Assembly: GCA_977017575.1 (NCBI GenBank)
Contig: CDRNVI010000003.1
Span: forward strand, 744,001-808,000
Length of the DNA stretch: 64,000 nt
Origin: Paramoeba atlantica
Taxonomy: Eukaryota > Protista > Discosea
Direction of reading: 5' to 3'
The notes under the pieces are model-generated. The model saw only the letters and a program-made list of their open reading frames with translations. It ran no database searches and was not told the DNA's origin. This document shows positions 9,261 through 63,167 of the stretch, piece after piece; the first letter of the stretch is position 1, and the number at the start of each line of letters is the position of its first letter. The position numbers and the translations under genes were made by a program.

Positions 9261-9686
9261 CCAAATCCAAATCATTCCGGATTGCTCCGGATGGTCACTG
9301 GCAAGCCAGACCCTTCACAGACAGATTTGGAAGTTCCGAGGCCGACGTCCTCTACCAGTTTCCGCTTGTCCAAGGCGGCACCAACGTGCTGTTGCCAACA
9401 CGCTGCGTCGACGAACTGTACGTCAACACGGCTTACCCAAGAGGTGTAAGCCGGGTAAGGGAGCTGGTTCCCTGAGGGGAGGGTCCGGGACGGTCCTCCG
9501 AGTACTGGGCCTAGTCGGTTATCAGCCCAGCCTCTTAGAGTGAGGCCGCCGGGAATATTTCGATGAGCGGGTTTGAACTCGCCGTCTGAGCACCATGTGC
9601 TTCAAACTTTGAATTCTTGCCACTCCGCCACCCCCGCCCACTCCGCCACCCCCGCCACCTCCGCCCACTCCGCCACCTCCGCCCTA
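9261..9686 (-). mobile_element. tRNA-headed SINE, copy 1 (head tandemly duplicated)
   Basis: A box TGGCGGAGTGG, B box GAGTTCAAACC, (TTTGGA)n tail; 12-bp TSD GGCACGGC(T/C)CCT at 9249-9260 and 9687-9698. Confidence 0.8.
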
Positions 9687-15745: not shown

Positions 15746-16715
15746 CTATCTTTGGAGTGTGTTGTGTTTTTCACTTCAAAAGAAGTGTTTTTTTTTTCAT
15801 AAAGAATCTTTTCTTGTAGTATATAAAAGGGGTTAAAAAAGATAAGCTGGCTGCTCGCGCTCGATCTGGTCAAATCTTCGGATTTGACTTGCGTGCTGCG
15901 TGGCACAGCTCCTAGCAAGCGATAAGGTGGGGCTTGTCCTAGGGAGGTAACATCTCCTCGGAGATATATTGCCTTTTTTCAATCAATTCAATCAAACTAG
16001 GCGTGATGCGTAGGGCCGTGTCAACAGTGACGCGGCTAAAAAACATTAAGGCGCTAACCGCAGAGCAAAGGAAACCTTTACTCATCTCTACCTCACATTG
16101 GGGAACCTTGCTTCCGAAAAAACAAGGCGTGAGAATAAAGAGCAGTTAACCGATTAACATCCATAACCTTCCAAAATTATAGGGACAACCTCCAAACCCC
16201 AGGACCCCGTCCGCTTTTTTTTTTTTTTATTAAGACAACGTTTTTGATGATTCTATGTAAAAAGTTTTTTTTTTTTTTTTAAATTATTTATGATTCTGAT
16301 AACAATAATAATAAAAAAGGAAGCAATCCACGCCCAATCCATCCGCGTGTTCCGGACCGGGTCTTTCGACCACTCCACGGCCTGACTTGTGAACCCTTCC
16401 CTTGCTATACGGGAGGGCGCAGGCGCGGGCCTGTGTCGACAGCGAAACGGTCGCGAAACAGGATGCTGGCCGACGGGGAGGAGATTCACTACCCGTGTAC
16501 TACCTCACTTGGGGTACCTAGCCCTGACGGACTAGGCGTGAGCATAGACTCTGTCGACCCGACCAGCACCCGTACCGGGGGTTTCCCACGAAAGTCACCT
16601 GGCCATACCCCTGGCCATACACAACGAGAGCCGGGTCGGCGTTTGCCGCGGGAAAACGTTGTATAGCGGCCAGATTTCGCAGGCGAGGAAGTCGTTGGGT
16701 GTGGCGAGTGATCCA

Positions 16716-35423: not shown

Positions 35424-35816
35424 AAAAAATCCAAAATCCAAAAAAATCCAAATCATTCCGGATTGCTCCGGATGGTCACTGGCAAGCCAGACCCTTCACA
35501 GACAGATTTGGAAGTTCCGAGGCCGACGTCCTCTACCAGTTTCCGCTTGTCCAAGGCGGCACCAACGTGCTGTTGCCAACACGCTGCGTCGACGAACTGT
35601 ACGTCAACACGGCCCACCCAAGAGGTGTAAGCCGGGTAAGGGAGCTGGTTCCCTGAGGGGAGGGTCCGGGACGGTCCTCCGAGTACTGGGCCTAGTCGGT
35701 TATCAGCCCAGCCTCTTAGAGTGAGGCCGCCAGGAATATTGCGATGAGCGGGTTTGAACTCGCCGTCTGAGCACCATGTGCTTCAAACTTTGAATTCTTG
35801 CCACTCCGCCACCTCC
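35424..35816 (-). mobile_element. tRNA-headed SINE, copy 2, abutting the 5S 3' end
   Basis: Near-identical to 36103-36490. Confidence 0.8.
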
Positions 35817-35822
35817 ACTTTA

Positions 35823-35941
35823 AGAGTAAAACACTCAGGGTTCCCGAGCGATCGCTCACCTCAGTACTAACTGAGCCTGACGGTGCTTAACTTCACAAAG
35901 CGAACGGGATGTGGTGTTTTCACCGTAGTATGGTCGTACCC
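35823..35941 (-). rRNA. 5S rRNA (one mismatch near the 3' end; T-tract terminator lost)
   Basis: GGGTACGACCATAC...GTGTT(T)TACTCT, 119 nt, kinetoplastid-type ends. Confidence 0.92.
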
Positions 35942-36102
35942 GGCGTAACTTGTGAAATCCCCACTATGAAAGAAGTATTTTCCACGACAATCTGCCTCAT
36001 CCTGAGTGTCCCACAGAGGCGCTACTCACCATGTTTACGCTAGCGCAGTGGCTTCCGGGGTTTTTATCATTCGAAAAGGTCACACGGGCTGAGGATCGAA
36101 CC

Positions 36103-36490
36103 GAAAGAGCGGAGGTGGCGGAGTGGCAAGAATTCAAAGTTTGAAGCACATGGTGCTCTGACGGCGAGTTCAAACCCGCTCATCGCAATATTCCTGGCGG
36201 CCTCACTCCAAGAGGCTGGGCTGAGAACCGACTAGGCCCAGTACTCGGAGGACCGTCCAGGACCCTCCCCTCGGGGAACCAGCTCCCTTACCCGGCTTAC
36301 ACCTCTTGGGTAAGCCGTGTTGACGTACAGTTCGTCGACGCAGCGTGTTGGTAACATCACGTTGGTGCCGCCTTGGACAAGCGGAAACTGGTAGACGACG
36401 TCGGCCTCTGAACTTCCAAATCTGTCTGTGAAGGGTCTGGCTTGCCAGTGACCATCCGGAGCAATCCGGAATGATTTGGATTTTTTTTTT
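36103..36490 (+). mobile_element. tRNA-headed SINE, copy 3 (388 bp)
   Basis: A box 36116-36126, B box 36166-36176, T-rich TTTGGA tail; perfect 10-bp TSD GGATCGAACC at 36093-36102 and 36491-36500. The empty site is present at 37945-37954. Confidence 0.88.
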
Positions 36491-36560
36491 GGATCGAACC
36501 TCCGTGCAAGTGTTTTGACATTCAGCACATGGCTACAGTTTGCCACGTGTTGCGAAAATT

Positions 36561-36636
36561 GACGGGGCGGGAATCGAACCAGGAGTTTGGTTCGTCAGCC
36601 TCAGAAAAGCACGCCCTGCCACTAGACAAGTTTCCA
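36561..36636 (-). promoter_or_regulatory. Degenerate tRNA-like element (A box and B box) between SL and 5S
   Basis: TGTCTAGTGG and GGTTCGATTCC followed by TTTT; no complete cloverleaf. Confidence 0.45.
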
Positions 36637-36728
36637 GGTTACATTTTGGGCTAAGACTCGTGGAACAACAAGTTCATCAGTTTGACAAAAGCGAACAATG
36701 AGCTCTGGTGGTTGGTAAAGCCCTTGTT

Positions 36729-36836
36729 AACTTTAACGATAAAGATACAGTTTCTGTACCTTGTTGGTATGAGAAGCTTCGAACTCTAAGTTCGCTTGAA
36801 GGCCCCGGTTCCCGAGAAGGGAGCTGGGGCTTATTT
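36729..36836 (+). ncRNA. Spliced-leader RNA gene (38-nt exon 36729-36766, GT donor)
   Basis: AACTTTAACGATAAAGATACAGTTTCTGTACCTTGTTG|GTATGAGAAGCTT, then two hairpins. The 3' end is estimated. Confidence 0.92.
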
Positions 36837-37670
36837 GCGTTACAATAACTGTCAACAGGCAGTCTGACTCGCAAAATCGGACTCCACCGATAAATAGGCA
36901 GGATGGCATGTTCATTAACGTCTAAAAATATGCGGCACCGCAATTTAAATCTGCACCCATCCTAACACATCACACAATATATCAACCAATCTTGTTGGTC
37001 ATCCGCAATCCCGGTCAATTCTTCCTACAAAGATCTCAACGACACGGCGCCCGCACATTGATAATGCATACGACCGGCTCCGAATACGCGGAACGCTTCT
37101 GCCCACACCTTTGTCTGCGGGGGAAAACCTCCGAATGCGTTGTGAGTCGATCAGTAAACGGAAATCTTCCTTAGATGGGAGCTTACGTGTGTTAGGCTAT
37201 CTGTTCGATACACCGCAGCAGCAAGGTGACACCTCTCGATGCCAGAGGATTCCGCTTCCTCGGTTTGCAGACGTTACATCCATCCCACCACCTGCTCCAG
37301 TAGCGTGGCACCGCACTTCCTAACGGGGAGTATGGGGATGTAAAGGCACTTATGCCATATCGATACTCCACAGAGTATCGACCGTTCAGCGACCAGGCAC
37401 TTTCCTCCAAGTTTCCCTGCCTTCTCAGGGGAGGCGACATCATTGAACAAGGGTAACCGCCTGTTTTACATACATTCATACATACAAAGGCATCTATGCG
37501 CCCTGTATTATAAAGCCGTACGTAAAAATCACAGCGTCCCGAGGACTCAATGCCGATTCGAAACGCAACTAGGCCCTTGAGGTGAGAGAGGCAAAGACGA
37601 CATTGAAGAAAATCTCGTGAAACGTCGTGAAAGGTCGTCGAAATCTCACCACCTGATTCCTCTTGCATTT

Positions 37671-37674
37671 AAAA
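37671..37674 (-). terminator. Pol III T-tract after 5S
   Basis: TTTT immediately 3' of GTACTCT. Confidence 0.6.
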
Positions 37675-37793
37675 AGAGTACAACACTCAGGGTTCCCGAG
37701 CGATCGCTCACCTCAGTACTAACTGAGCCTGACGGTGCTTAACTTCACAAAGCGAACGGGATGTGGTGTTTTCACCGTAGTATGGTCGTACCC
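37675..37793 (-). rRNA. 5S rRNA
   Basis: 119 nt, GGGTACGACC...GTGTTGTACTCT. Confidence 0.95.
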
Positions 37794-38014
37794 GGCGTAA
37801 CTTGTGAAATCCCCACTATGAAAGAAATATTTTCCACGACAATCTGCCTCATCCTGAGTGTCCCACAGAGGCGCTACTCACCATGTTTACGCTAGCGCAG
37901 TGGCTTCCGGGGTTTTTATCATTCGAAAAGGTCACACGGGCTGAGGATCGAACCTCCGTGCAAGTGTTTTGACATTCAGCACATGGCTACAGTTTGCCAC
38001 GTGTTGCGAAAATT

Positions 38015-38090
38015 GACGGGGCGGGAATCGAACCAGGAGTTTGGTTCGTCAGCCTCAGAAAAGCACGCCCTGCCACTAGACAAGTTTCCA
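38015..38090 (-). promoter_or_regulatory. Degenerate tRNA-like element, second unit
   Basis: Copy of 36561-36636 at +1454 bp. Confidence 0.45.
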
Positions 38091-38182
38091 GGTTGCATTT
38101 TGGGCTAAGACTCGTGGAACAACAAGTTCATCAGTTTGACAAAAGCGAACAATGAGCTCTGGTGGTTGGTAAAGCCCTTGTT

Positions 38183-38290
38183 AACTTTAACGATAAAGAT
38201 ACAGTTTCTGTACCTTGTTGGTATGAGAAGCTTCGAACTCTAAGTTCGCTTGAAGGCCCCGGTTCCCGAGAAGGGAGCTGGGGCTTATTT
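38183..38290 (+). ncRNA. Spliced-leader RNA gene, second unit (exon 38183-38220)
   Basis: Matches 36729-36836; repeat period 1454 bp. Confidence 0.92.
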
Positions 38291-38639
38291 GCGTTACAAT
38301 AACTGTCAACAGGCAGTCTGACTCGCAAAATCGGACTCCACCGATAAATAGGCAGGATGGCATGTTCATTAACGTCTAAAAATATGCGGCACCGCAATTT
38401 AAATCTGCACCCATCCTAACACATCACACAATATATCAACCAATCTTGTTGGTCATCCGCAATCCCGGTCAATTCTTCCTACAAAGATCTCAACGACACG
38501 GCGCCCGCACATTGATAATGCATACTAAGCGGCACATTGATAATGCATATAGCACATTGATAATGCATCCAAATCCAAATCCAGTAGCATGGACGTGGGA
38601 CCGACAAACGACACTCAACATTTCGCTAGGAAAAGTGGT

Positions 38640-40747
38640 GGCAGAAAAGGCAAACCTTAAAATCAATGTTGGTCCACGGAAAACGGCTTGGATGACACTT
38701 GGAAAGGTGAAGGATGATAATACCGCCCTAGAAATAGACGGATTGGGGGAAATTCCTAGAGTACAAAAGTACAGATATCTTGGCAGCACACAGAACACCG
38801 AGGATACCTGTACGTCCCCCAAGGAAAGACTGCGACTAGGATGGGGTGTAATGCACAAGCTTCGCGCCATATGGAAGTCCTCTATCTCCTCTCATTGCAA
38901 ATTTCAAATTTTCAAAACACTCGTTCAATCCGTCGTGTACTACAACCCTGGCACATGGAATGTCAATCAGGCAGAACTTCACGATATTCAAGTTCAAGTA
39001 AATAGAATGCGCAGAATTGTATTTGGCGTAAAAAGTGCTTGTGACTCTCATCTCAGAACGGAATCGCTTTATCCTACTGACTTAAAACCGGAAACAGTAA
39101 TTAAGACACAGAGAGCTTCCTTGATAGGGCATCTTGTGCGCCATCCTACACCGTTTACTACAGCAGTACTATGGAGAACAAATGATGAGGCCTCTAAACC
39201 AACATTGTCCGAACGGTGTGCCCACGAACTACACTCTGATGTTACTGAAATTCTACAACTTGGACAAGATCGCCCCACATGGCGGAAGAAACTGGAAAAA
39301 CTACAGGTGGAGCTGGAACCACGGCCTTCTTACACAAAGTCTTGTTCTCGTGCTTGGGAAAAAAGTATTAAAAAGATATTGGAAAACAAGGACTACCAAA
39401 CTCTACAGTACGTGGAAGAAAGTAGCACCCCTTTTCCCATAAGCGACTCGGAAACACACTTATATACGGATGGGTCGCTCATTCCGGGTACAAAGAAACA
39501 ACTCCAAGGATGCGGCATAGTAATAATACGAAACAACGAACGTACATTATTCTACGGGACAAGACCTCCGGAAAAATTCTGTGATTCCATACAATCTATA
39601 GAGGCATATGCTGTTGTCGAGGCAATTTCTCTGGCTAGCAACTACGAGGGAGATGTAATACTTCACACGGATTCAGAGTACATATGGGATTTCTTCCACG
39701 AAACTGTGCATCGGTATCGGCTCATTGGGTTCCACTCATTCAAAGGGTGCGAAGTAATGAGATCCCTTCAAAACGCTTACTACAGTACAAAACATACTAA
39801 AAAATTCTACTGTATCAAGGTCAAATCACACAATGAAAATATGTACAACGATACCGCAGATTATTTAGCCAAAAAGGCGTGCAAGCTGGAAGGAAATGAA
39901 CTAGCTATAAAATACTACGGAGATATATTGCACGGCAATGCAAAGAGGAAATCAGAGCAAAATAATACCTCAAGATGTCGTAAAACTCAGAGGACTAGAA
40001 AAGGCACAAACCAAAGAGCAGTACCTGTATCTACGGGGCCCCCTTTGTCGGAAAACTCAAACGATTCACGCTCAACGAAACAACCCAAACGGAGCATTCG
40101 AATAAATGAAAAGAGGACGAAATCTCCCATACGCAAAGCTTCTTTACACAAGAAGACAAAGGGTATCAACTTAATTTCCATCCCCCCACAGATAACCAAT
40201 TCGAACGTAAGCATTGAGGTGAAACGAAATAAACCGCAAATGAAGCGTCTAAAAGATACAAGTTTGGACTTATCATCATCCCAGACAAAGAGTGAACCAG
40301 AAAATGAAAAGGAGTCACAAAAGCGAGTGAAAAGGACATCAAAGAAAAAACCTTGTTTTACAGCTAAAGGGAAAGACAAGAGTATAATTGATGTAAAAAA
40401 GCATGGAAATAAGCGGGAGAATTAGCCTTACGACATTAACTTTCCGATTTGAGAGATGCTATTGGAGCCTATGCTTCTGTTATATTTAAGTTAATTACCA
40501 TCAGATTTGGTGAATTAAAGAATTACGTTCGCTGACGTGATTGCGACGGTGAGTTGTCTTATAGTGTTCAAAAGCTAAGTACTAATGGTTCATAGAGATC
40601 GATTGATTAGGAGGCTTGAAATTGAAAGTCTGTTTGTTTTTGAAAAAATTTCTGTAAGTGTGTTCTGTGTTGATATTTTGAAGGTGGAAATATTTAGGGG
40701 AAATTTTTGAATCCTTTAACTGGGCTAACATCTCAGTGTTGGTTGGT
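38640..40747 (+). mobile_element. 5'-truncated APE-type LINE (RT C-terminus + RNase H) with (TTGG)n tail
   Basis: 13-bp TSD TAGGAAAAGTGGT at 38627-38639 and 40748-40760; YRYLGS, YTDGS, HTDS, VKSH..N..AD; homologous to 54308-56130. Confidence 0.88.
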
Positions 40748-44328: not shown

Positions 44329-46752
44329 ATGAGAAATAATGAAGAAAATGAGAACATAACGTTCTGTAAGGTGGATCTTCGGAACGCCTTTAATAACGTG
44401 AGCCGACCCGTCTTCATCTTTCTCACACGAAAGCATTTCCCTGAACTATCCCCATGGGTAGAATGGTGTTATGCCAATCACAGCTGTCTCACATTCGGCA
44501 ATGATTTTATCCCCTCGGCAGAAGGAGTGCAACAAGGAGACCCTCTGGGGCCACTCCTCTTCTCCTTGGTGTTAGCAGAGGTAACAGAAGAAATTGCATC
44601 AAATTCTAACCTACGAACACAATTATGGTATTTAGATGACGGTGTGCTTGTAGGTGAGCCCAAAGAAGTCCGTAAAGCCCTAGACGTCCTCGACGAGATA
44701 GGACCGAAGTGGGGACTCTTCCTGAATCTCTCCAAGTGCGAGATCATTACCCCCCCAGCATCAGCTCATACCTCCGTTTTCTTTCCTGACATCCCCAGTG
44801 ATAAAATACGGTACGACGGGAACTTCGACATTCTTGGAAGCCCAATAGGCTCTGCGGAACACTGTGCGGAGTTTCTCATGACACACGCGATTGAACCAGC
44901 CCGCGAAACATTAGAAGCCACTGCTGTGTTAGAAGGTCCCCAAATAGCTCTCGCACTAATACGGCAATGTTCGGGGTTTTGTCAGATGGTGTACGCACTG
45001 CGCACCACTCCTCCCCAAGCCCTTGGAGAATTATGCCAAAAACTTGACTCTCATCTAGCCCAGGCCGTGGAGCACGCAATTTCTCCCTTAGGCGTCGCCG
45101 CTCGCGACCAAATACAACGACCAAAACGCCACGGCGGGTTCGGACTTCGCTCATCAATTCTCCACCCGTCAGCAGCCTACGTCTCTTCCTTCGCGCACGC
45201 CGCTAGCTTGGACAACTGGGACCCCACAGAAGCTGAGGGATTTTCCAGCTCAGCACATGACATAAATGACAAAGTTGGGACTGATCTGGTTGATCCATAC
45301 ACTGGACGCATTACCAAACCTAGTGTGCCTGGTGAATATCATGCAAATCGGAGCATCCTTTCCCGCCCAGCGAAAAGAAAACTCGCACAATCCCTCAATC
45401 ACGCCCTTCTCCCCGTCTCGACGGATCAGGAAAAGATCATCCCGAGGCAAAAACATCTCAGCCAAGCTATCTCGGATAGGGAATTTCAAACGGCATATTC
45501 AAAGGCAGACGCAAGAACGCGGGCGCGATGGATCTCGCAGTCCGGAAAAGGGGCCGGAAACTGGGCTTTCGCAACTCCCTCCAAGACCAGAGGCTACGCT
45601 TTCACCCACACGGAGTTTCGTACCCTAACACGCTGGTGGCTAGGAATGGACGTCTTCCCCGAAGATCGGCCTTGCCCAGCTGACGGGTGCACCCTTCCCT
45701 TGCTCAAGAATGGAGAGCATGCTTTGCTCTGCAAGAACGGCCATGTTATCATCTCACGGCACAACGCTCTGGCCCAACAATTTACATCGTTCTGCAGCAG
45801 AGCCTTCCTGGCGCCACAGAGAGAGAAGAGTTTGGGAAATCGGGGTCCTGGGGGGCTCTCACGAGACCAGCAGACGTATTTCTGCCAACTGCCTCCATCG
45901 CCAAAGGATCTTTAGCGCAAGGCATGGTCCTAGATTTTGCGGTCACTCACGCACAGCAAACAAAGTATTTGGACTCAGTCCACAATGCTAGCTGGATGAC
46001 CCCGGGGTCTTTTGCCGAGCACTTCGCGGAGACCAAGGCGCGACAGCGACAAGAAGCAGAAAAAGCAGGACACCTCTTCACAGCGATGGTGGTGGAATCC
46101 TTTGGTTCCTGGAGCGAGAGTGCGCTAGCGTTACTCCGGGACATCGGAACCCAACGGGCGAATGCATCCAAAGGGCTCCTTTCACGAGACCAAGCGCGAA
46201 ACGATCTCCTAACAGATCTGAACGTGACGCTAATGCGTTCTCAAGCCAGGATGATGGTTTCGCGCATCCGCGAAGAGGACCCAGCGAATCCTTTGGTAGA
46301 GGCTTAAGCCTCTACTGACAGTCCTATTTCAGCACGAAGACGCCATGGTATCCAGGACGGGTGCTGGTCGGGTCGACAGAGTCTATGCTCACGCCTATCC
46401 CGCGAGGGCTAGGTACCCCAAGTGAGGTAGTACACGGGCAGTGAATCTCCTCCCCGTCGGCCAGCATCCTGTTTCGAGACCGTGTCGCTGTCGACACAGG
46501 CCCGCGCCTGCGCCCTCCCGTATAGCAAGGGACGGGTTCACAAGTCAGGCCGTGGAGTGGTCGAAAGACCCGGTCCGGAACGCGCGAATGGATTGGGCCT
46601 GGATTGCTTGTTTTTATTTTTACTGTGTCTTGTTTGTCGTATATATTTAGGGGAGATTGAATTGCTAGTTTTGGGCTGAGAAAAAACAAAAGGTACATCT
46701 GTGGAAACAAAAAGAATTGCTAATTTGATTGCTTGTTAAAAAAAAAAAAAAA
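44329..46752 (+). mobile_element. 5'-truncated CRE-A element (RT, CCHC, REL with a frameshift near 45850, 3' UTR, poly(A))
   Basis: VDLRNAFN, GVQQGDPLGPLLF, WYLDDG, LDFAVTH, VVESFGSWS. Confidence 0.88.
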
Positions 46753-46753
46753 A

Positions 46754-47125
46754 CAAATCCAAATCATTCCGGATTGTGCCGGATGGTCACTGGCAAGCCA
46801 GACCCTTCACAGACAGATTTGGAAGTTCAGAGGCCGACGTCGTCTACCAGTTTCCGCTTGTCCAAGGCGGCACCAACGTGCTGTTGCCAACACGCTGCGT
46901 CGACGAATTGTACGTCAACACGGCCCACCCAAGAGGTGTAAGCCGGGTAAGGGAGCTGGTTCCCTGAGGGGAGGGTCCGGGACGGTCCTCCGAGTACTGG
47001 GCCTAGTCGGTTATCAGCCCAGACTCTTAGAGTGAGGCCGCCAGGAATATTGCGATGAGCGGGTTTGAACTCGCCGTCTGAGCACCATGTGCTTCAAACT
47101 TTGAGTTCTTGCCACTCCGCCACCT
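46754..47125 (-). mobile_element. tRNA-headed SINE, copy 4
   Basis: Near-identical body, A and B boxes present. Confidence 0.8.
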
Positions 47126-47190
47126 TCAATGCATATAGCACATTGATAATGCATATAGCACATTGATAATGCATATAGCACATTGATAAG
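47126..47190. repeat. 20-bp tandem repeat GCACATTGATAATGCATATA (about 3 copies)
   Basis: The same motif occurs once in the SL spacer (near 37055) and repeated at 38507-38567. Confidence 0.75.
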
Positions 47191-53953: not shown

Positions 53954-54307
53954 GTTGAGGAGCCAACCAACCAACCAACCAACCAACACTGGGAGAATTT
54001 GCCCAGTTAAAGGATTTACAATTTTCTCCTGAACATTTAACCTTTCAGTCCAACCGCGCGGAACTAACTTGCAGAAAATTTTTCGAAAACAAACAGACTT
54101 TTTATTTTATGTATCCTAATCATTCGATCCCTATGACACTTCAGTACTTAGCCTTCGTCTGCTGTATAAGTCACTTGCCGATGTGAGCACGACAGCAAAC
54201 GGTTCAATCCACTTTTTCTGAAACTTGCAACGATACAAAGAAAAATATTGGAACTAAATGCACCTCCTATGTGAAATTCATTTTTGCATAAGCATTAGTA
54301 TGAAAGG

Positions 54308-57306
54308 TCACTTTTCATGCTCTGTCACGTTTACTTTCTTATTGCCCGTAGTTGATCGCGAACTTGACAATATCTTCGTTGTCTTATTGATTTCCGTAGT
54401 CTTCTGTCGACTTTCGTTGTGTTTTTCGCCTTTTGTCACTTGGGTATCTTCCTCTCCTGTATCTTTTAATCGCTTCTTTTGCGAATGATTCGAACGCGCT
54501 TTTTCTAATATAATTGTATTTGGTCTGACTGTCCGTGAAGGCTCGGGGGCAGAATCTTTATTTTTATGCTTTTTTGTGTTTAATACAGTTGAAGTCATGT
54601 TGCGCGGTGAATTCCTAGATCTTTTGACTGTATTTTGATCACTAGTTTCCTGATTATCGTTTTCATTGGACTTGCTACGGTTTCCGCGTATTTTAGATTT
54701 TGTAGCTGGGGGTTTTACGGTCGTTGTTTCCATTGTTTGAGATTGTTCTATTTTGAAACCTTGTCGCCTACATTGGGTCTTAGTTAAGCGGGGTCCCTGA
54801 TTCAGACCTGTCTTTCTTTTACTTTCCAGCATCAGTACTTCCCCGAAATACTTAACTGAGACTTCACGTTTTGCTAGTTCACATGCCTCTTTCGCCATGG
54901 AGTCGGCTGTGTCGTTGTATGGGTTTTCGTTATGGGATTTTACTTTTACGCAATAGAAATTTCTGTTCGTCTTAATATCAAAATAAGCGTCTCTCAGCAA
55001 TTCCATGGTTTTACGGTTTTCGAAAGATTGATACCCAATGAGCCTATATTTATGAACTATTTCGTGAAAGAATTCCCATAGGTACTCCGAATCTGTGTGT
55101 AAGATAACATCTCCCTCATACGCCTTTGCCTCTTCTATGGCCTCAATTGCAGCATATGATTCGATCGATTGAATTGAGCTGGAATATTCGGGAGGTGGTT
55201 TCATTCCTCTAAATTGTATGCGCTCGCGTCCTCGCAAGATTACCATACCGCATCCCTTGAGTTGTTGATTCTTTTTAAAGATAAGCGATCCGTCAGTGTA
55301 AATATGTGTTTCGTTCTCTCTAATGGGAAACGCCGTTTTTCCTTCTTCGATGAATTGTAGCTCTTTATACCCACTGTGGTGAGCGATTGACGTTTGATAG
55401 CGTTTATCCCAAGACGTTGAAGATACTTTTATGTATGAAGGACGTGGTTCCAGCTCTTTCTGAAGTTTTTCCACCAGCTTGCGCCAATCAGATCGACTTT
55501 GGCCCAATCGAAGTATTTCGGAAACATTAGAGTGTAGTTCAGCTGCGCATCTTTCAGACAAGGAAGGTTTTGAAGTTTCGTCATTCGTCCGCCACATTGC
55601 AGCCGTAAGAAACGGTTGAGAATGCCGTATCAAGTGCCCTATGAGAGAAGCGCGTTGTGTCTGGACCACCGTCGCTGGTTTTAAGTCGGTTGGATATAAA
55701 GAGGTTTCTCTAAGGTGGATGTCCTTCGTATTCTTTACACCGAAAACAACTCTTCGCATTCGATTAATCTGAACCTGGACGGAGTGAAGCTCATCTTGAG
55801 TAATGTTCCAAGTTCCCGGATTATAGTATACCACCGATTGGATTAAAGTTTTAAATATGTGGAATTTACACTTTGAAGAAATAGGAGCTGCCCATAGAGA
55901 TCTCAGTTTGTGCATTGCACCCCATCCTAGCCTCAATCGCTCTTGTGGAGAGGTGCATTTATCCTCCGTATTTTGGGGGCTTCCGAGATATCTATATGAT
56001 TCCACCTTAGGAATCTCACCTAAGCCTTCAATGGTCAACGGTTCACCATCATCTTGCAACTTTCCTAGGATCATCCATGCAGTTTTGTGTGGCCCAACAT
56101 TGATCTGAAGATTCGCCTTTGCTGAGGATAAAAATATATTGTTGATCATTAGTTTTAGCTCATTTTTCGAGGATGCGAAGAACACAATGTCATCTGCATA
56201 GTTGATATCGGAGACCCGCAGTTCTTTTAGTCCCCGACTTCTGGTGCCCGAAGAGTGCGTAACAAGCCCTAGCTTATGCCTGTCTATAGCTTCAACTAGT
56301 ATGCGATCTAAAACCATGATGAACAGGTATGGCGCTAGTACATCTCCTTGTAGAGTGCCTTGTGTGAGAGAAAATTCTTCAGTCTTTCCATAAGGGGTGC
56401 GAACATGGGATCGTAGGTTCTTGTATATTGACATGATGGCATTCGAAAGATTGATAGGTATGTCAAACGCTAGGAGAGTGGCCTCAATTGCAGCGAAAGA
56501 TACTGAGGGAAAGGCTTGTTTAAAGTCGATGAAGCATGCGTACACCCCCGAGCCCCTCTTGGCTTTTGTCGCTATTTCCATAAAAGTCGCTTGAGCGCCT
56601 GCAGTTGAACGATTTGGCCGAAAACCGAATTGATTGCATCGCAAAGAATTTTCTACGGCAGGTTGTATTCGATCGAGGATCATTCGGTTCAATACTTTTG
56701 CAATGTGATTGACAAGGCAGATGGGGCGCCAATTGGCTAGCAACTTTAGATTTCCTTTCTTCGGCAGAGGGACTTGCATTATAGATTTCCATGATTCGTC
56801 CGCACGCCCAGTATCAAGGACGTCGTTCATGATACCAAGAATTATGGCTAGCAGTTCACTGTCATCAGCTATAGCCCTGAGGGCCTCCACCGGTATGTTG
56901 TCATCCCCGGGAGCTTTACCTGTTTTAAGTTTATTCAGTGCGGAGATTATCTCATCTGTACGAAATCTACAGCCGTCAATCTTTTCCAAGCGTTTGGGGG
57001 CAGGAGAAAAAGTTATGGGTTCATTGGTTTTTGTGTCGGCTCTTCCTATTTCGCTGAAATGTTCGCGGACAAGTTTAAGGCTATCGTTTACTGACCCTCC
57101 GAATAATGTGAATTCAAGCCTATTTTCTCCGACTATATTCCGTATAGTTCTATACGCAGACTTAGGAATGGTTTGCAGTTCTTTTTCTAAGTTCTCACAT
57201 TCAGTTACTATACAATGTTCTACGCGGCTTACGTGCTCCTTGGATAGGCGGAGGAATTCCGTTTTATTATTCACAACTTTCATCAAGTGTGTCAAGCTCA
57301 AATTTT
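54308..57306 (-). CDS. LINE RT + RNase H
   Basis: WRPICL, QFGFR, FIDFKQAF, GTLQGDVLAPYLF, YADD, YTDGS. Confidence 0.92.
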
Positions 57307-58722
57307 GGCTAGGGGGGACCTTCGATGAGTACTCATCGTAAGTTGTAGACTTTCGATGAGACTCACGGAAAGTTGTAGACTTTCGATGAGTACTCATCGG
57401 CCCAAATGGCTAGGGGGGACCTTCGATGAGTACTCATCGTAAGTTGTAGACTTTCGATGAGACTCACGGAAAGTTGTAGACTTTCGATGAGTACTCATCG
57501 AAGGTGTTTTTGACTTTTTCAATTTTTCGTATTTTATCAATTTTTTGCGAAGGGCCAACTGTGAGCGTAGCCCTGGGACATAATAATATTTTTTGGCGAC
57601 CCGTGCGCTCCATGCGGAGGTGGTGGATATTAGCACGGCGGGCGGAGGAGGAGTTGGCATCACGGCCTTCTTTTTCCGGCGGGCAGGAGGGAGCGGCAAA
57701 ATCTCAGGACTACTCCTGATTCTTTTGCTTGGGAGCGTGTGAACACTCCCATGAAAGGTAAAAAAAAGTAAATAATCAACAAGGTACAGAAACTGCATCT
57801 TTATCATTAAAGATTATTGTACGTGTGCTTCTCTCTAGATTCGTGGGAAGCAATTTGCGAAACCCAACTACCTTGATAACAAATTTTAGTACCCATTTTG
57901 GCCGCGCGGGGGCCCCCGCGTGAGCGGGGGTGCGCGCGGCAGCGAAACGGCGAGGGCCCGCGTGAGCGGGCCTGAGCCGTACCCCGCGTAGGATTCCCCT
58001 GTGCGTCGTTAGTGGGAAGCAATTTGCGAAGCTCACTGAATTTCGTAGTTTTCGCTACGGAGGCGTTGTCAACGTATGTAGTGAAGTGTAGAATACTGAA
58101 CGCACGGAAAAGGAAAATCAAAAAAAAATCTTGGGTGTTCCACAAAAGTCCTTGACTTCCACCGTAAATTTCCGTTCGTTGAGAACTCAACGAACGTACC
58201 CCCAACCCGTCTACCCCTTCCGCAGGATTGTCCAGAGGCAAGGCCCAACTGTGAGCGTAGCCCTGTTGTTTTTTGTAAGACGGATTCTTCAGCTATTTTG
58301 CCGGTTTTAACGTAGGTATCATGTTTCCGTTACGTTGATGGCCATCAGACTATGAGTAGATCATATGTTTTCTTTTTGTAAATTATGCAGTCTGACTTAG
58401 CTTCTATTATCGATTAGGAGTTCGGATTCTCTTTTGACCATGGGACATAATAATATCTTTTGGCGCCCCGCGCGCTCCAGCACGCGGGTAGCGCACTGGG
58501 AACCTGTCTACCCCTTCCGAAGGATTGTGAATTTGTTTTATACAAACGCTTCAGTTTGTTTGCCACAAACGCTTCGGTGAGTAATAAAAAAACCTCGAAA
58601 ATCTCTATTAGAGTCGCTCAAAAACGCTTCGATGAGTACTCATCGAAAGTTGTAGACTCTCGATGAGACTCACGGAAAGTTGTAGACTTTCGATGAGTAC
58701 TCATCGAAGGTCCCCCCTACCC
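57307..58722. mobile_element. Non-autonomous DNA transposon (1416 bp), relative of 12203-13621
   Basis: TIR GG(c/g)TAGGGGGGACCTTCGATGAGTACTCATCG; 8-bp TSD CAAATTTT at 57299-57306 and 58723-58730; left end tandemly duplicated; interior shared with the other copy. Confidence 0.85.
57777..57812 (-). other. SL exon relic (2 substitutions) inside the DNA transposon
   Basis: Homologous to 12767-12802. Confidence 0.85.
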
Positions 58723-60237
58723 CAAATTTTGAACTACGGTCTCGGAGTAGAAGTTCATTTCTGTATTTTTGGATTGTCTTTTAGGAAGGGACAAGGAGGA
58801 ACGTTCTATTGCCTTGGACAATTTATCCCACGTTATTTTCTTTGAGTTATCAAGATCGGGCGAAGTTTCCTCAGTAGTTTCATTCTCAGAACGATTTCTC
58901 TTGGGAGCTTGTTTTAGAGATCGCTTCACATTTGCTACAAAATTGCTTTTAACATTATCATTCTTTAATGCTCTCCAAAAAGGAGGTTGCACAGTCTTCT
59001 CTTGCGCTTTCCATCGGAAATTAAATACTGCAGAAAGAGCACAGTGTCGTGAGAGAACCGGGGCGATAGTTGCTTTCTGTGCTCGGATGGAAGAGAAAAA
59101 ACGACGGTTGACAATAATGTGATCAAGTTGTTTGGTAAAACCTTCTGGGTATTTTTTGGATCTAGGGAAGCGGTAAGTCCATTTTCTACGTGCGCAACAT
59201 CCTTCGTGCGTGGATTTGGCTCCTAGTGAATTTAAGAACTGTCTCAGCCTCTTGGCTCGTTTTGTGTTGCACTTCCAGCCTTTCGGGGTAAGCAAAGGTG
59301 CGTTCAAATCCCCACAAACTATTTTGACAGGACTATCATCCCCATGCCAAGCGTCAAATAAAGAATCATCAAAAGAGTCTTGTATTGTCGTATTCGCTGT
59401 CGCCGTAGGCGAATAAACGTTGATTAAGCATGCCTTGCTGTTTTCAAGGGTAAAGTTTGCTTTCATTATGCGATTGCTAATGCTTTCAACATAGAGAGGT
59501 TTTGTGCTAATTAGTGCCATTCCGTTGTATCCTTTTATTGCACTCATCAGATAGAGGTGAATCGAGATACCGTTTATATGAAGCTTTCGATGTAAAATCA
59601 GTTCGTTGCCTTCAAACGTCAGCCTTGTTTCCTGCAGTGCCATAATTTCAATGCGTTGACTCCTCATAAAACCGGCCACCTGATGCAGTCTAATACATTT
59701 TCTTAGTGCAAATGAATCCGTTGCTTTTAGTTTCAAGGTGTCTACATTCAAGGTACCAATTGTAAATCCCTCTCTCATAGCGCTCATCTTGGGATGCTGT
59801 TTCCGGTAGCCACTCCGGAAACAGTTTTTGCGCTTCCTATTCTTTCTTACCTTTCCAATTTTTCCCGACAGGCCTACTCTGCCACCTGTTATAATAACGC
59901 GGGGATCCTTCGGAGGGAAGGGAAGAAGACGATCATTAACCACATCGTACTTGACAATGCGCGTGCCATCATCAAGGACAGATTTAACTACCCCCTCCCA
60001 AACCCTCGTACTGGTATCATATGTTTTACACCAGGTTACGGCAAAGTGCTTCCCGGGCATCATCAGATTGGTCATCCTGAACAGGGCACGCGGTCGGAGT
60101 TTTGATACTCCCCATTCCTGCTGCGGAGGCAGGAAAAGGTTTCCCCGACAACACGTGGCCGATCGGAGTCTTTGTTTGATCGCTTCCAAAGCTCCGAACG
60201 GTCCGGACGCCCCCGGCCATTTTTCATTAAAATTCAT
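58723..60237 (-). CDS. LINE N-terminus with AP endonuclease; likely start MNFNEKW at 60237
   Basis: IGTLNV, LQETR, NVYSPT, GDLNA, LDHI, SRHCAL. Confidence 0.88.
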
Positions 60238-61760
60238 TAATAAAAAGTGTTGTCTTAATAAAAAGTGTTGTCTTAATAAAAAGTGTTGTCTTAATAAAAA
60301 GTGTTGTCTTAATAAAAAGTGTTGTCTTAATAAAAAGTGTTGTCTTAATAAAAAGTGTTGTCTTAATAAAAAGTGTTGTCTTAATAAAAAGTGTTGTCTT
60401 AATAAAAAGTGTTGTCTTAATAAAAAGTGTTGTCTTAATAAAAAGTGTTGTCTTAATAAAAAGTGTTGTCTTAATAAAAAGTGTTGTCTTAATAAAAAGT
60501 GTTGTCTTAATAAAAAGTGTTGTCTCAATAAAAAGTGTTGTCTTAATAAAAAGTGTTGTCTTAATAAAAAGTGTTGTCTTAATAAAAAGTGTTGTCTTAA
60601 TAAAAAGTGTTGTCTTAATAAAAAGTGTTGTCTCAATAAAAAGTGTTGTCTTAATAAAAAGTGTTGTCTTAATAAAAAGTGTTGTCTTAATAAAAAGTGT
60701 TGTCTTAATAAAAAGTGTTGTCTTAATAAAAAGTGTTGTCTTAATAAAAAGTGTTGTCTTAATAAAAAGTGTTGTCTTAATAAAAAGTGTTGTCTTAATA
60801 AAAAGTGTTGTCTTAATAAAAAGTGTTGTCTTAATAAAAAGTGTTGTCTTAATAAAAAGTGTTGTCTTAATAAAAGGTGTTGTCTCAATAAAAAGTGTTG
60901 TCTTAATAAAAAGTGTTGTCTTAATAAAAAGTGTTGTCTTAATAAAAAGTGTTGTCTTAATAAAAAGTGTTGTCTTAATAAAAAGTGTTGTCTTAATAAA
61001 AAGTGTTGTCTTAATAAAAAGTGTTGTCTTAATAAAAAGTGTTGTCTTAATAAAAAGTGTTGTCTTAATAAAAAGTGTTGTCTTAATAAAAAGTGTTGTC
61101 TTAATAAAAAGTGTTGTCTTAATAAAAAGTGTTGTGTTAATAAAAAGTGTTGTCTTAATAAAAAGTGTTGTGTTAATAAAAAGTGTTGTCTTAATAAAAA
61201 GTGTTGTCTTAATAAAAAGTGTTGTCTTAATAAAAAGTGTTGTCTTAATAAAAAGTGTTGTCTTAATAAAAAGTGTTGTCTTAATAAAAAGTGTTGTCTT
61301 AATAAAAAGTGTTGTCTTAATAAAAAGTGTTGTCTTAATAAAAAGTGTTGTCTTAATAACAAGTGTTGTCTTAATAACAAGTGTTGTCTTAATAAAAAGT
61401 GTTGTCTTAATAAAAAGTGTTGTCTTAATAAAAAGTGTTGTCTTAATAAAAAGTGTTGTCTTAATAAAAAGTGTTGTCTTAATAAAAAGTGTTGTCTTAA
61501 TAAAAAGTGTTGTCTTAATAAAAAGTGTTGTCTTAATAAAAAGTGTTGTCTTAATAAAAAGTGTTGTCTTAATAAAAAGTGTTGTCTTAATAAAAAGTGT
61601 TGTCTTAATAAAAAGTGTTGTCTTAATAAAAAGTGTTGTCTTAATAAAAAGTGTTGTCTTAATAAAAAGTGTTGTCTTAATAAAAAGTGTTGTCTTAATA
61701 AAAAGTGTTGTCTTAATAAAAAGTGTTGTCTTAATAAAAAGTGTTGTCTTAATAAAAAGT
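60238..61760. repeat. 18-bp minisatellite (AATAAAAAGTGTTGTCTT)n, about 85 copies
   Basis: Directly visible, with few variant units. Confidence 0.97.
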
Positions 61761-61929
61761 GTTGAGGAGCCGCCTGCAGGCCGGGTGAGGCGAAGCTGAG
61801 GGAGACTTTACCCCCCCTGAAAAGTTGAAAAGTTGGGTAGGGGAAAGCAGGAAAGTAGGGAGAAAGGTGGGAAAAGTATGTCAAGAGGTGAGAAAGAGGA
61901 GAAAGAGAGAGAAAAATTTTCTTTATTTG

Positions 61930-63167
61930 CATAAAAACAATATAAAATTGCTAATTTGATTGCTTGTTTTCAACTCGTAAAAAAAAAAAAAAAAAAAAAA
62001 AACGCCATAATATCCAGGACGGGTGCTGGACGAGTCGACAGAGTCTATACTCACGCCTAGCCCGCGAGGGCTAGGTACTCCAAGTGAGGTAGTACACGGG
62101 TAGTGAATCTCCTCCCCGTCGGCCAGCATCCTGTTTCGTGACCGTGTCGCTGTCGACACAGGCCCGCGCCTGCGCCCTCCTGTATAACAAGGGAAGGGTT
62201 CACAAGTCAGGCCGTGGAGAGGTCGAATAAAAAACGTTGTCTTAATAAAAAACGTTGTCTTAAATATCCGTAGTCGGTACTTGGGCGGGTCATCATATGT
62301 TGGACCACATAAAACAGCATAAAACAGCATGGATGACACTTGTCCCCTCGAAACCAGCAAAGCCTCAAAGTAAAAAAGAACAGTTCCCGGATCAATTATT
62401 GTATACGCGCCAATTGTTGTCAAACGTGATGAAGAATCAATGCAGAAGTAGCAGTATCTAATATATTCGAAAGGACCTAATATATTCGAAGGCAACTAAT
62501 CAATACTTATTTGTACGGAGATATACGTGTGGTAGTGAACTCTTTTAGAGTCGTAAACTCCCAATCCACTTTTCATCGGTGATGTAATCTCGGAGTTGAG
62601 ACACTACCGTGTAAGCCGATAGCTTTTCAAGTTCCAGCTGAAAAGCCTCACGCACGTTTTCATATTTTCGAAAGACCCGGTCCGGAACGCGCGAATGGAT
62701 TGGGCATAGATTGCTTGTTTTTATTGTTATTGTTTTTATTGTTCTTATACTTACGGGAGATCGAATTGCTATTTTTGGGCTACAACATGTGAAATTGCTA
62801 ATTTGATTGCTTGTTTACAAATCATATACCCCCCCCAATGGACCTTCATGGTTCATGTATTGGGTAATATAGAGGCAATGCCGCGTTTCATACTTCTCCC
62901 CCCTTATTAATCGCAAAAAAAAAAAAAAAAACCGGAACGCGCGAATGGATTGGGCATAGATTGCTTGTTTTTATTGTTATTGTTTTTATTGTTCTTATAC
63001 TTACGGGAGATCGAATTGCTAGTTTTGGGCTCCAAAATATGAAATTGCTAATTTGATTTCTTATTTTAAAATCATATACCCCCCCCAATGGACCTACTTG
63101 GTTCGTCTAATGGGTCAAAATATAGAGGCAATGCCGCGATTCATACTTCAAAAAAAAAAAAAAAAAA
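61930..63167 (+). repeat. Head-to-tail chain of CRE-A 3' UTR copies, each ending in poly(A)
   Basis: A-tracts near 61979-62002, 62915-62930 and 63150-63167. Confidence 0.8.
62228..62667 (-). pseudogene. CRE-B 3' end inserted in a CRE-A UTR, ending in 18-bp-repeat variants
   Basis: Translates VREAFQLELEKLSAYTVVSQLRDY..*, similar to 27039-27150. Confidence 0.7.

Follow-up and report, generated by a model that had tools for sequence, protein, structure and literature searches.

SINEs are familiar from animals and plants, in which the tRNA-derived class (SINE2/tRNA) includes rodent B2 and ID, salmonid SmaI and HpaI, and plant Au or p-SINE1. In the eel, the partners UnaSINE1 and UnaL2 form a SINE/LINE pair that depends on a 3′ simple-repeat tail and a nearby stem-loop. 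Small structural RNAs also enter such elements: human U6-L1 and 5S-containing chimeras are LINE-mediated chimeric retrocopies, and zebrafish SINE3 is derived from 5S. Only four clades of transposable elements (INGI, CRE, VIPER and TATE) were recognized in trypanosomatids by a 2025 survey, all of them also present in Bodo saltans (PMC12278014). Within trypanosomatids, the short non-autonomous forms are RIME, NARTc and SIDER (PMC12278014; PMC2323293). The B. saltans genome paper reports the same four clades and makes no mention of SINEs (PMC4728078), while an earlier B. saltans paper leaves retroposons unmentioned. Merlin DNA transposons have been described in Bodo and Perkinsela (PMC8101967), and the Diplonema genome paper names SINEs only as an analogy for rRNA fragments. 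A first-pass annotation of the DNA considered here took RIME, NARTc and SIDER to be the known short retroposons and knew of no tRNA-derived SINE beside them, in agreement with the literature searched (PMC12278014), which yielded no paper describing a tRNA-type SINE in kinetoplastids.

The repeat described here was recognized in a window of 64,000 nucleotides, this being the whole stretch of DNA that was analysed. It resembles tRNA-derived SINEs in being short and non-coding, with a 5′ head that carries Pol III boxes at tRNA positions, a unique body, a variable 3′ tail, target-site duplications, hundreds of copies and a probable dependence on LINEs. It departs from them in that its head is too decayed for a covariance-model tRNA call, its tail is T-rich, (T2-17GGA)n, rather than A-rich, its 3′ body is not common to any of the LINE families discussed below (LINE-A, -B and -C), and its host is a kinetoplastid. 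A 36-nt head probe gave four matches in the window against none expected by chance, and the copies, at ~375-390 bp, are near-identical on alignment with scattered differences, much as the first-pass annotation had described them. The reference copy (36103-36490, plus strand; 388 bases) consists of an 8-nt variable leader, the 372-nt element and a tail of TTTGGA followed by T10. Its A box (TGGCGGAGTGG; 36116-36126, plus strand) fits TRGCNNAGTGG and occupies nt 8-18 of the element, and its B box (GTTCAAACCC; 36168-36177, plus strand) fits GTTCRANNCC and occupies nt 60-69; the gap of about 40-41 nt between them agrees with the spacing of ~40 nt first reported. A short hairpin (TCCGGA-GCAA-TCCGGA; 36455-36470, plus strand), whose z-score is not significant on its own, is predicted 4 nt upstream of the tail (36475-36490, plus strand), which would double as a Pol III terminator.

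The other three copies lie on the minus strand. The first (35424-35822) meets the 3′ end of a 5S rRNA gene in a head-on fusion and has a (TnGGA)n tail; the second (9261-9686) carries three reiterated pieces of its own first ~14-22 nt at its 5′ end and has the tail TTTGGATTTGG; and the third (46738-47127) ends in TTTG+T16 and sits beside a 20-bp x3 tandem repeat. All four copies hence carry the (TTTGGA)n or T-rich tails originally ascribed to them. The tandem repeat, of ~20 bp (TTATCAATGTGCTATATGCA), occurs at both 38507-38583 and 47128-47189. It adjoins the head of the SINE at 47128, and at 38569-38583 it adjoins a short (TCCAAA)2 run that sits at the 5′ junction of LINE-B.

Target-site duplications of 10 and 12 bp flank two of these copies, and the corresponding empty sites are both present in the window, as had been claimed. 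The reference copy is bounded by GGATCGAACC on the left (36093-36102, plus strand) and right (36491-36500, plus strand), and the same site is uninterrupted at 37945-37954 (plus strand) in the neighbouring repeat unit of 5S and putative spliced-leader RNA genes. Read on the minus strand, this empty site is GGTTCGATCC, a B-box-like part of a tRNA-like stretch. The copy at 9261 is enclosed by the 12-bp duplication AGGRGCCGTGCC (9698-9687 and 9260-9249, minus strand), and its empty site, AGGAGCTGTGCC (15902-15913, minus strand), lies inside a paralogous repeat (15902-15928). Inspection of their flanks revealed no clear target-site duplication around the 35424 and 46738 copies, which neighbour the 5S gene and the 20-bp repeat respectively.

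The family extends well beyond the window. BLAST against the source assembly (45.7 Mb in 248 contigs) returned 497 first-look candidates, and the scored full-length copies were 95-100% identical to the query. The 3′ 21-mer of the element has 260 exact matches genome-wide. An exact A box-N40-B box pattern has 182, each listed match belonging to this SINE family; the boxes are thus conserved across the genome, and the copy-number search that had been proposed is answered by these two counts. The head and B-box region gave no copies in metagenome scans. Thirty fetched copies diverge from their own consensus by a mean of 1.24% (range 0.3-3.4%), a value that may flatter the family given that the copies fetched were the top BLAST hits. 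At 372 nt, the consensus has no ATG-initiated open reading frame longer than 52 codons, making it non-coding. The 372-nt element is a young, abundant, short, non-coding, dispersed SINE with at least ~260 copies. Independent insertions number fewer than 260, because some copies lie within larger tandem arrays (on contigs C10/C105, with a period of ~3965 bp, C12, 6485, and C21, 1995) and because some of the fetched loci are copies of one another (L004/L009, L007/L015 and L012/L013).

These arrays and mutually duplicate loci are what would be expected if the copies had spread mainly by segmental or tandem duplication of DNA. That reading is scarcely credible for the family as a whole, as the fetched copies mostly stand between unique flanks with duplications of their own, two empty sites were identified, and neither the length nor the composition of the tail is constant among copies. 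Of the 30 fetched copies, about half (15 on our reading) are bounded by exact repeats of 9-13 bp, and the duplicated target sites are diverse, with no obvious site preference among the fetched copies. Tails are (T2-17GGA)n or a plain T run in 28 of the 30 and poly(A) in the remaining two (L024 and L029:2786-3152), each of which has a 12-bp duplication; the poly(A)-tailed copies suggest occasional mobilization by a second, poly(A)-dependent route. The 5′ ends are equally variable: 0-8 variable bases precede GCGGAGG, one copy has a 22-nt leader, some reiterate the first 14-22 nt several times, and others bear an inverted copy of the first 26 nt (5′ snap-back). Ragged, reiterated and inverted 5′ ends of this kind are the expected outcome of end-jumping and snap-back by reverse transcriptase. 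The family has spread by reverse transcription at staggered nicks, a conclusion drawn from the dispersed copies, the 9-13 bp duplications, the two empty sites, the 1.2% divergence and the 260 matches of the 3′ 21-mer. The recent activity originally proposed for it is supported by the low divergence, the duplications and the empty sites.

Short retroposons in this group of organisms need not be SINEs of the Pol III type, and the element might instead be a deletion derivative or 3′ fragment of a LINE, as RIME, NARTc and SIDER are. It shares with these three a short, non-autonomous form, a kinetoplastid host and a likely dependence on LINEs. The window is moreover packed with LINEs, and two of its SINE copies lie just downstream of, and on the same strand as, open reading frames encoding reverse transcriptase. 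One of these two, on the other hand, was itself inserted there, as its duplication and empty site show, and all 30 fetched copies begin at the same head between unrelated flanks. A sensitive BLAST search of the SINE against the window with the four copies masked found no match, in keeping with the unique body noted at the outset; nor was similarity detected to the LINEs in the window and in the fetched loci, or to the 3′ untranslated regions of LINE-A, LINE-B and LINE-C. Genome-wide, the last 35 nt of the SINE occur in no non-SINE context, and the terminal 15-mer with a different base 20 nt upstream occurs at five places, all of which are mutated or truncated SINE copies. The body is thus not the 3′ end of a longer LINE, one of the two outcomes named earlier as refuting the SINE reading, and descent from a LINE fragment is highly improbable. 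RIME, NARTc and SIDER are truncated forms of ingi/L1Tc-type LINEs with a shared 5′ signature and poly(A) tails, whereas the present element contains Pol III boxes but nothing derived from a LINE, and its tails are mostly T-rich (poly(A) in 2/30). In place of their 77-79-nt 5′ signature (Pr77), it begins with a tRNA-like head that contains the A and B boxes.

The ancestry of this head is less sharply defined than its promoter. Counted from GCGGAGG, the A box falls at nt 8-18, exactly the tRNA positions as measured from the first base of the element, and the B box begins at nt 60, within 1 nt of its position in the 81-nt tRNA-Ser(UGA) of the same genome, the genes for which were located by a loosened sequence pattern after a stricter first pattern gave no match. 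By our own estimate, the chance of both boxes occurring at such spacing in a random 372-mer is ~1e-6. In semi-global alignments against 22 tRNAs from the genome, the top matches are all to tRNA-Ser (class II), with a score of 11 versus 7.4 +/- 1.5 for shuffled sequences (37/1000 shuffles as high; p ~0.04). The first-pass description of the element as tRNA-headed is therefore upheld as regards A and B boxes that are conserved and lie at tRNA positions; it is not upheld by any tRNA model. ARAGORN finds no tRNA in the head, and Rfam returns nothing at gathering score, nor at E<=10 over 2.9 kb or 101 nt. Stringent local alignment of the head to tRNAs of the genome is not significant, it is predicted to fold not as a cloverleaf but as a rod, with pairing between the A-box and B-box sides (z = -2.7), and the head of a related family described below reaches only E ~7 with tRNA-clan models. 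The lack of TTTT in the SINE body is uninformative, a feature shared by 62% of shuffles.

These observations admit an alternative in which the element is a SINE whose boxes came from another Pol III type-2 template or arose by convergence, with no tRNA ancestry in the head. The silent tRNA models, the rod fold and the non-significant local alignment all speak for it; the exact register of the A box, the near-coincidence of the B box with that of tRNA-Ser(UGA), the uniform preference for class II tRNA-Ser and the low chance of random co-occurrence speak against it, and it is considered unlikely. The boxes, their tRNA-like positions and the weak best match to tRNA-Ser instead suggest a decayed class II tRNA-like head that has retained its promoter, descent from a tRNA being probable, though not proven.

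Several features of the tRNA complement were recorded alongside. Long tandem arrays of tRNA-Ser(UGA) genes, with a period of ~1.48 kb (~3.05 kb in parts of C96/C106), are present on contigs C56, C57, C72, C96 and C106 of the assembly (G000; loci L065-L075), and the longer array units contain a LINE fragment with a 499-aa open frame. On each of the small contigs C108-C133 and C221 the same tRNA-Ser(UGA) is present, very rich in A and T and different from its nuclear counterparts; these contigs may represent an organelle, symbiont, virus or repeat. Contigs C137-C185 (loci L031-L060) each hold many identical class I tRNA genes, and their tRNA-Ser type differs from that on the low-numbered contigs; they could represent either a tRNA-rich compartment or another genome within the assembly.

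The window is dense in retroelements, and candidate partners for the SINE are to be found among its LINEs and those of the fetched loci. LINE-A (53963-62000, minus strand; upper boundary approximate) has an APE open reading frame, a second encoding reverse transcriptase and RNase H, a 3′ hairpin and a TG(TTGG)n tail; an 18-bp unit repeated 85 times at 99% identity (60237-61764) overlaps its APE frame (58717-61932). LINE-B (38580-40745, plus strand) is a 5′-truncated relative of LINE-A with 54% amino acid identity, the same 3′ hairpin and a (TTGG)n tail. A third family, LINE-C, comes from outside the window (fetched locus L019, contig C26) and encodes an RNase H. Among its copies, amino acid identity is 95-100%, one copy retaining an open frame of 1664 aa, and the LINE-C 3′ end consists of a hairpin (ACCGAC-TTTAC-GTCGGT) followed by C and then TTTTGGA(TTGGA)n. 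The 3′ 18-mer of LINE-C occurs 41 times, about ten of the occurrences being dispersed and the remainder in a tandem array, and the tail TTTTGGATTGGA follows every LINE-C 3′ end listed except the C39 pair and one C58 copy. The unit of the C10/C105 array (period ~3965 bp) contains a SINE copy together with a LINE-C 3′ end on the opposite strand.

The first-pass annotation named the (TTGG)n-tailed APE LINE as a candidate partner while noting that the two shared no 3′ body. The latter point is confirmed by the SINE having no similarity to the LINE-A 3′ untranslated region; the partnership itself is possible, but the (TTGGA)n tail of LINE-C fits the SINE tail better. The accompanying search for a LINE ending in (TTTGGA)n gave a divided result, in that a search for long (TTTGGA)n arrays found only one SINE copy and an unrelated microsatellite, whereas LINE-C ends in the closely similar TTTTGGA(TTGGA)n. 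One SINE copy has a (TTGGA)4 tail that matches the LINE-C tail unit. What the SINE and LINE-C share is confined to the tail unit TnGGA and a look-alike hairpin, and z-scores for the 3′ hairpins of the SINE and the LINEs are not significant. Like the eel pair, they have a tandem tail unit of varying number after a small hairpin; unlike it, they have the tail unit but not the 3′ stem-loop sequence in common. Because its tail follows the TnGGA pattern of the SINE, LINE-C is ranked as the most likely helper, with the (TTGG)n LINEs as second choice, among the three families whose 3′ ends were compared out of the dozens in the genome.

An additional record of reverse transcription is provided by fusions of the SINE to 5S rRNA. 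The 5S 3′ U-run is joined directly to the SINE leader at five places in the genome, which represent three independent junctions, one of the three events having been duplicated later; the fusions have not been amplified as a family. In the fusion at L005 (G000:C48:253324-256702), 5S and SINE together lie inside a single duplication, AAGGCGACC, and the 5S 5′ end appears twice more, as partial restarts, ahead of the complete 5S copy. This fusion is a template-switch chimera, and the three independent events show that templates were switched during reverse transcription. As in the human chimeras and zebrafish SINE3, a full-length Pol III RNA (5S) is involved and its U-run end is joined to the 5′ end of a retroposon in the same orientation, one fusion here falling wholly inside a single target-site duplication; the differences are that a whole SINE, and not a piece of a LINE, forms the 3′ partner, and that the fusions have remained unamplified. 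The window copy at 35424 has a fusion-type junction, the U-run end of the 5S gene at 35823-35941 (minus strand) being joined directly to the SINE leader, but its 5S keeps the native upstream sequence, and the DNA past its SINE tail is unlike the native repeat unit. This arrangement suggests that the 5S end of a cDNA paired with a 5S gene already in place, the DNA in between being lost.

The resident 5S genes (35823-35941 and 37675-37793, minus strand) belong to a tandem unit of ~1.45 kb that spans 35823-38460 of the window and pairs 5S (minus strand) with a putative spliced-leader RNA gene (plus strand). The sequence at ~36725 and ~38180 (plus strand) is what we take to be the kinetoplastid spliced-leader RNA gene, going by the conserved motif ...CAGTTTCTGTAC...TTG/GTATGAG. 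Between the 5S and putative spliced-leader genes lie two tRNA-like stretches on the minus strand (~36490-36640 and ~37945-38090) that have good B boxes and receive no call from ARAGORN or Rfam; one SINE copy is inserted exactly within the B box of one of them.

The 372-nt family also has a relative. A (TTC)n-tailed SINE adjoins one of the 5S-SINE fusions, and full-length copies of it are present in L008 and L014; the three stretches (L013:2005-2425, L008:2015-2510 and L014:600-1140, all on the minus strand) carry a head like that of a class I tRNA and end in (TTC)n or (TCTG)n. The two families have in common a segment of ~120 nt that runs from the B box into the core (score 25 vs 13 +/- 1.8 for shuffles), while the A-box half, the 3′ half and the tail differ between them. 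In sequence, the two look like a modular superfamily. A broader joint reading would see in them the first Pol III (tRNA-type) SINEs described in Kinetoplastea/Euglenozoa, forming a modular superfamily that combines a shared ~120-nt module with differing A-box halves, 3′ modules and tails, (TnGGA)n in one and (TTC)n in the other. The 3′ modules would each suit a separate LINE family, one with a reverse transcriptase that reiterates the final few bases of its template, and the 5S fusions would be intermediates caught on the way to compound SINEs. Taken together, this joint reading is plausible but tentative, its chances being put a little short of even.

The account that best explains the whole, and is held with high confidence, is that of a ~372-nt non-coding SINE whose RNA, probably made by Pol III, is reverse-transcribed, probably with the help of a LINE acting in trans. 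RNA polymerase III would transcribe the SINE from the internal A and B boxes of its decayed tRNA-like head, the transcript probably ending within the run of T residues that follows TTTGGA. An endonuclease and a reverse transcriptase encoded by a LINE would then act in trans on the SINE RNA, the reverse transcriptase priming on the U-rich UUGGA end and slipping there to yield the (TnGGA)n tails. The likely helper would be the young, RNase-H-bearing LINE family with a hairpin and a TTTTGGA(TTGGA)n end, and template switching between the SINE and 5S rRNA accounts for the fused copies.

Judged from its sequence, this kinetoplastid element is a real SINE, young and abundant, and carries a Pol III promoter of the tRNA type; it would move by the standard mechanism. 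The general mechanism is already well known, such that the gain lies in taxonomic range and a new system rather than in a new principle; the points of interest are the host lineage, the T-rich (TnGGA)n tail, the modular tie to a second family and the 5S fusions. If true, a young and abundant Pol III-type SINE would add a class to the mobile elements of kinetoplastids, among which the papers searched list no SINE (PMC12278014; PMC4728078; PMC8101967). In a free-living relative of trypanosomes, the family would supply insertion polymorphisms usable as markers. It would further serve the study of template choice by LINEs with short-repeat tails, of Pol III promoters outside tRNA genes under polycistronic Pol II transcription, and of the template switching that builds chimeric retrocopies.
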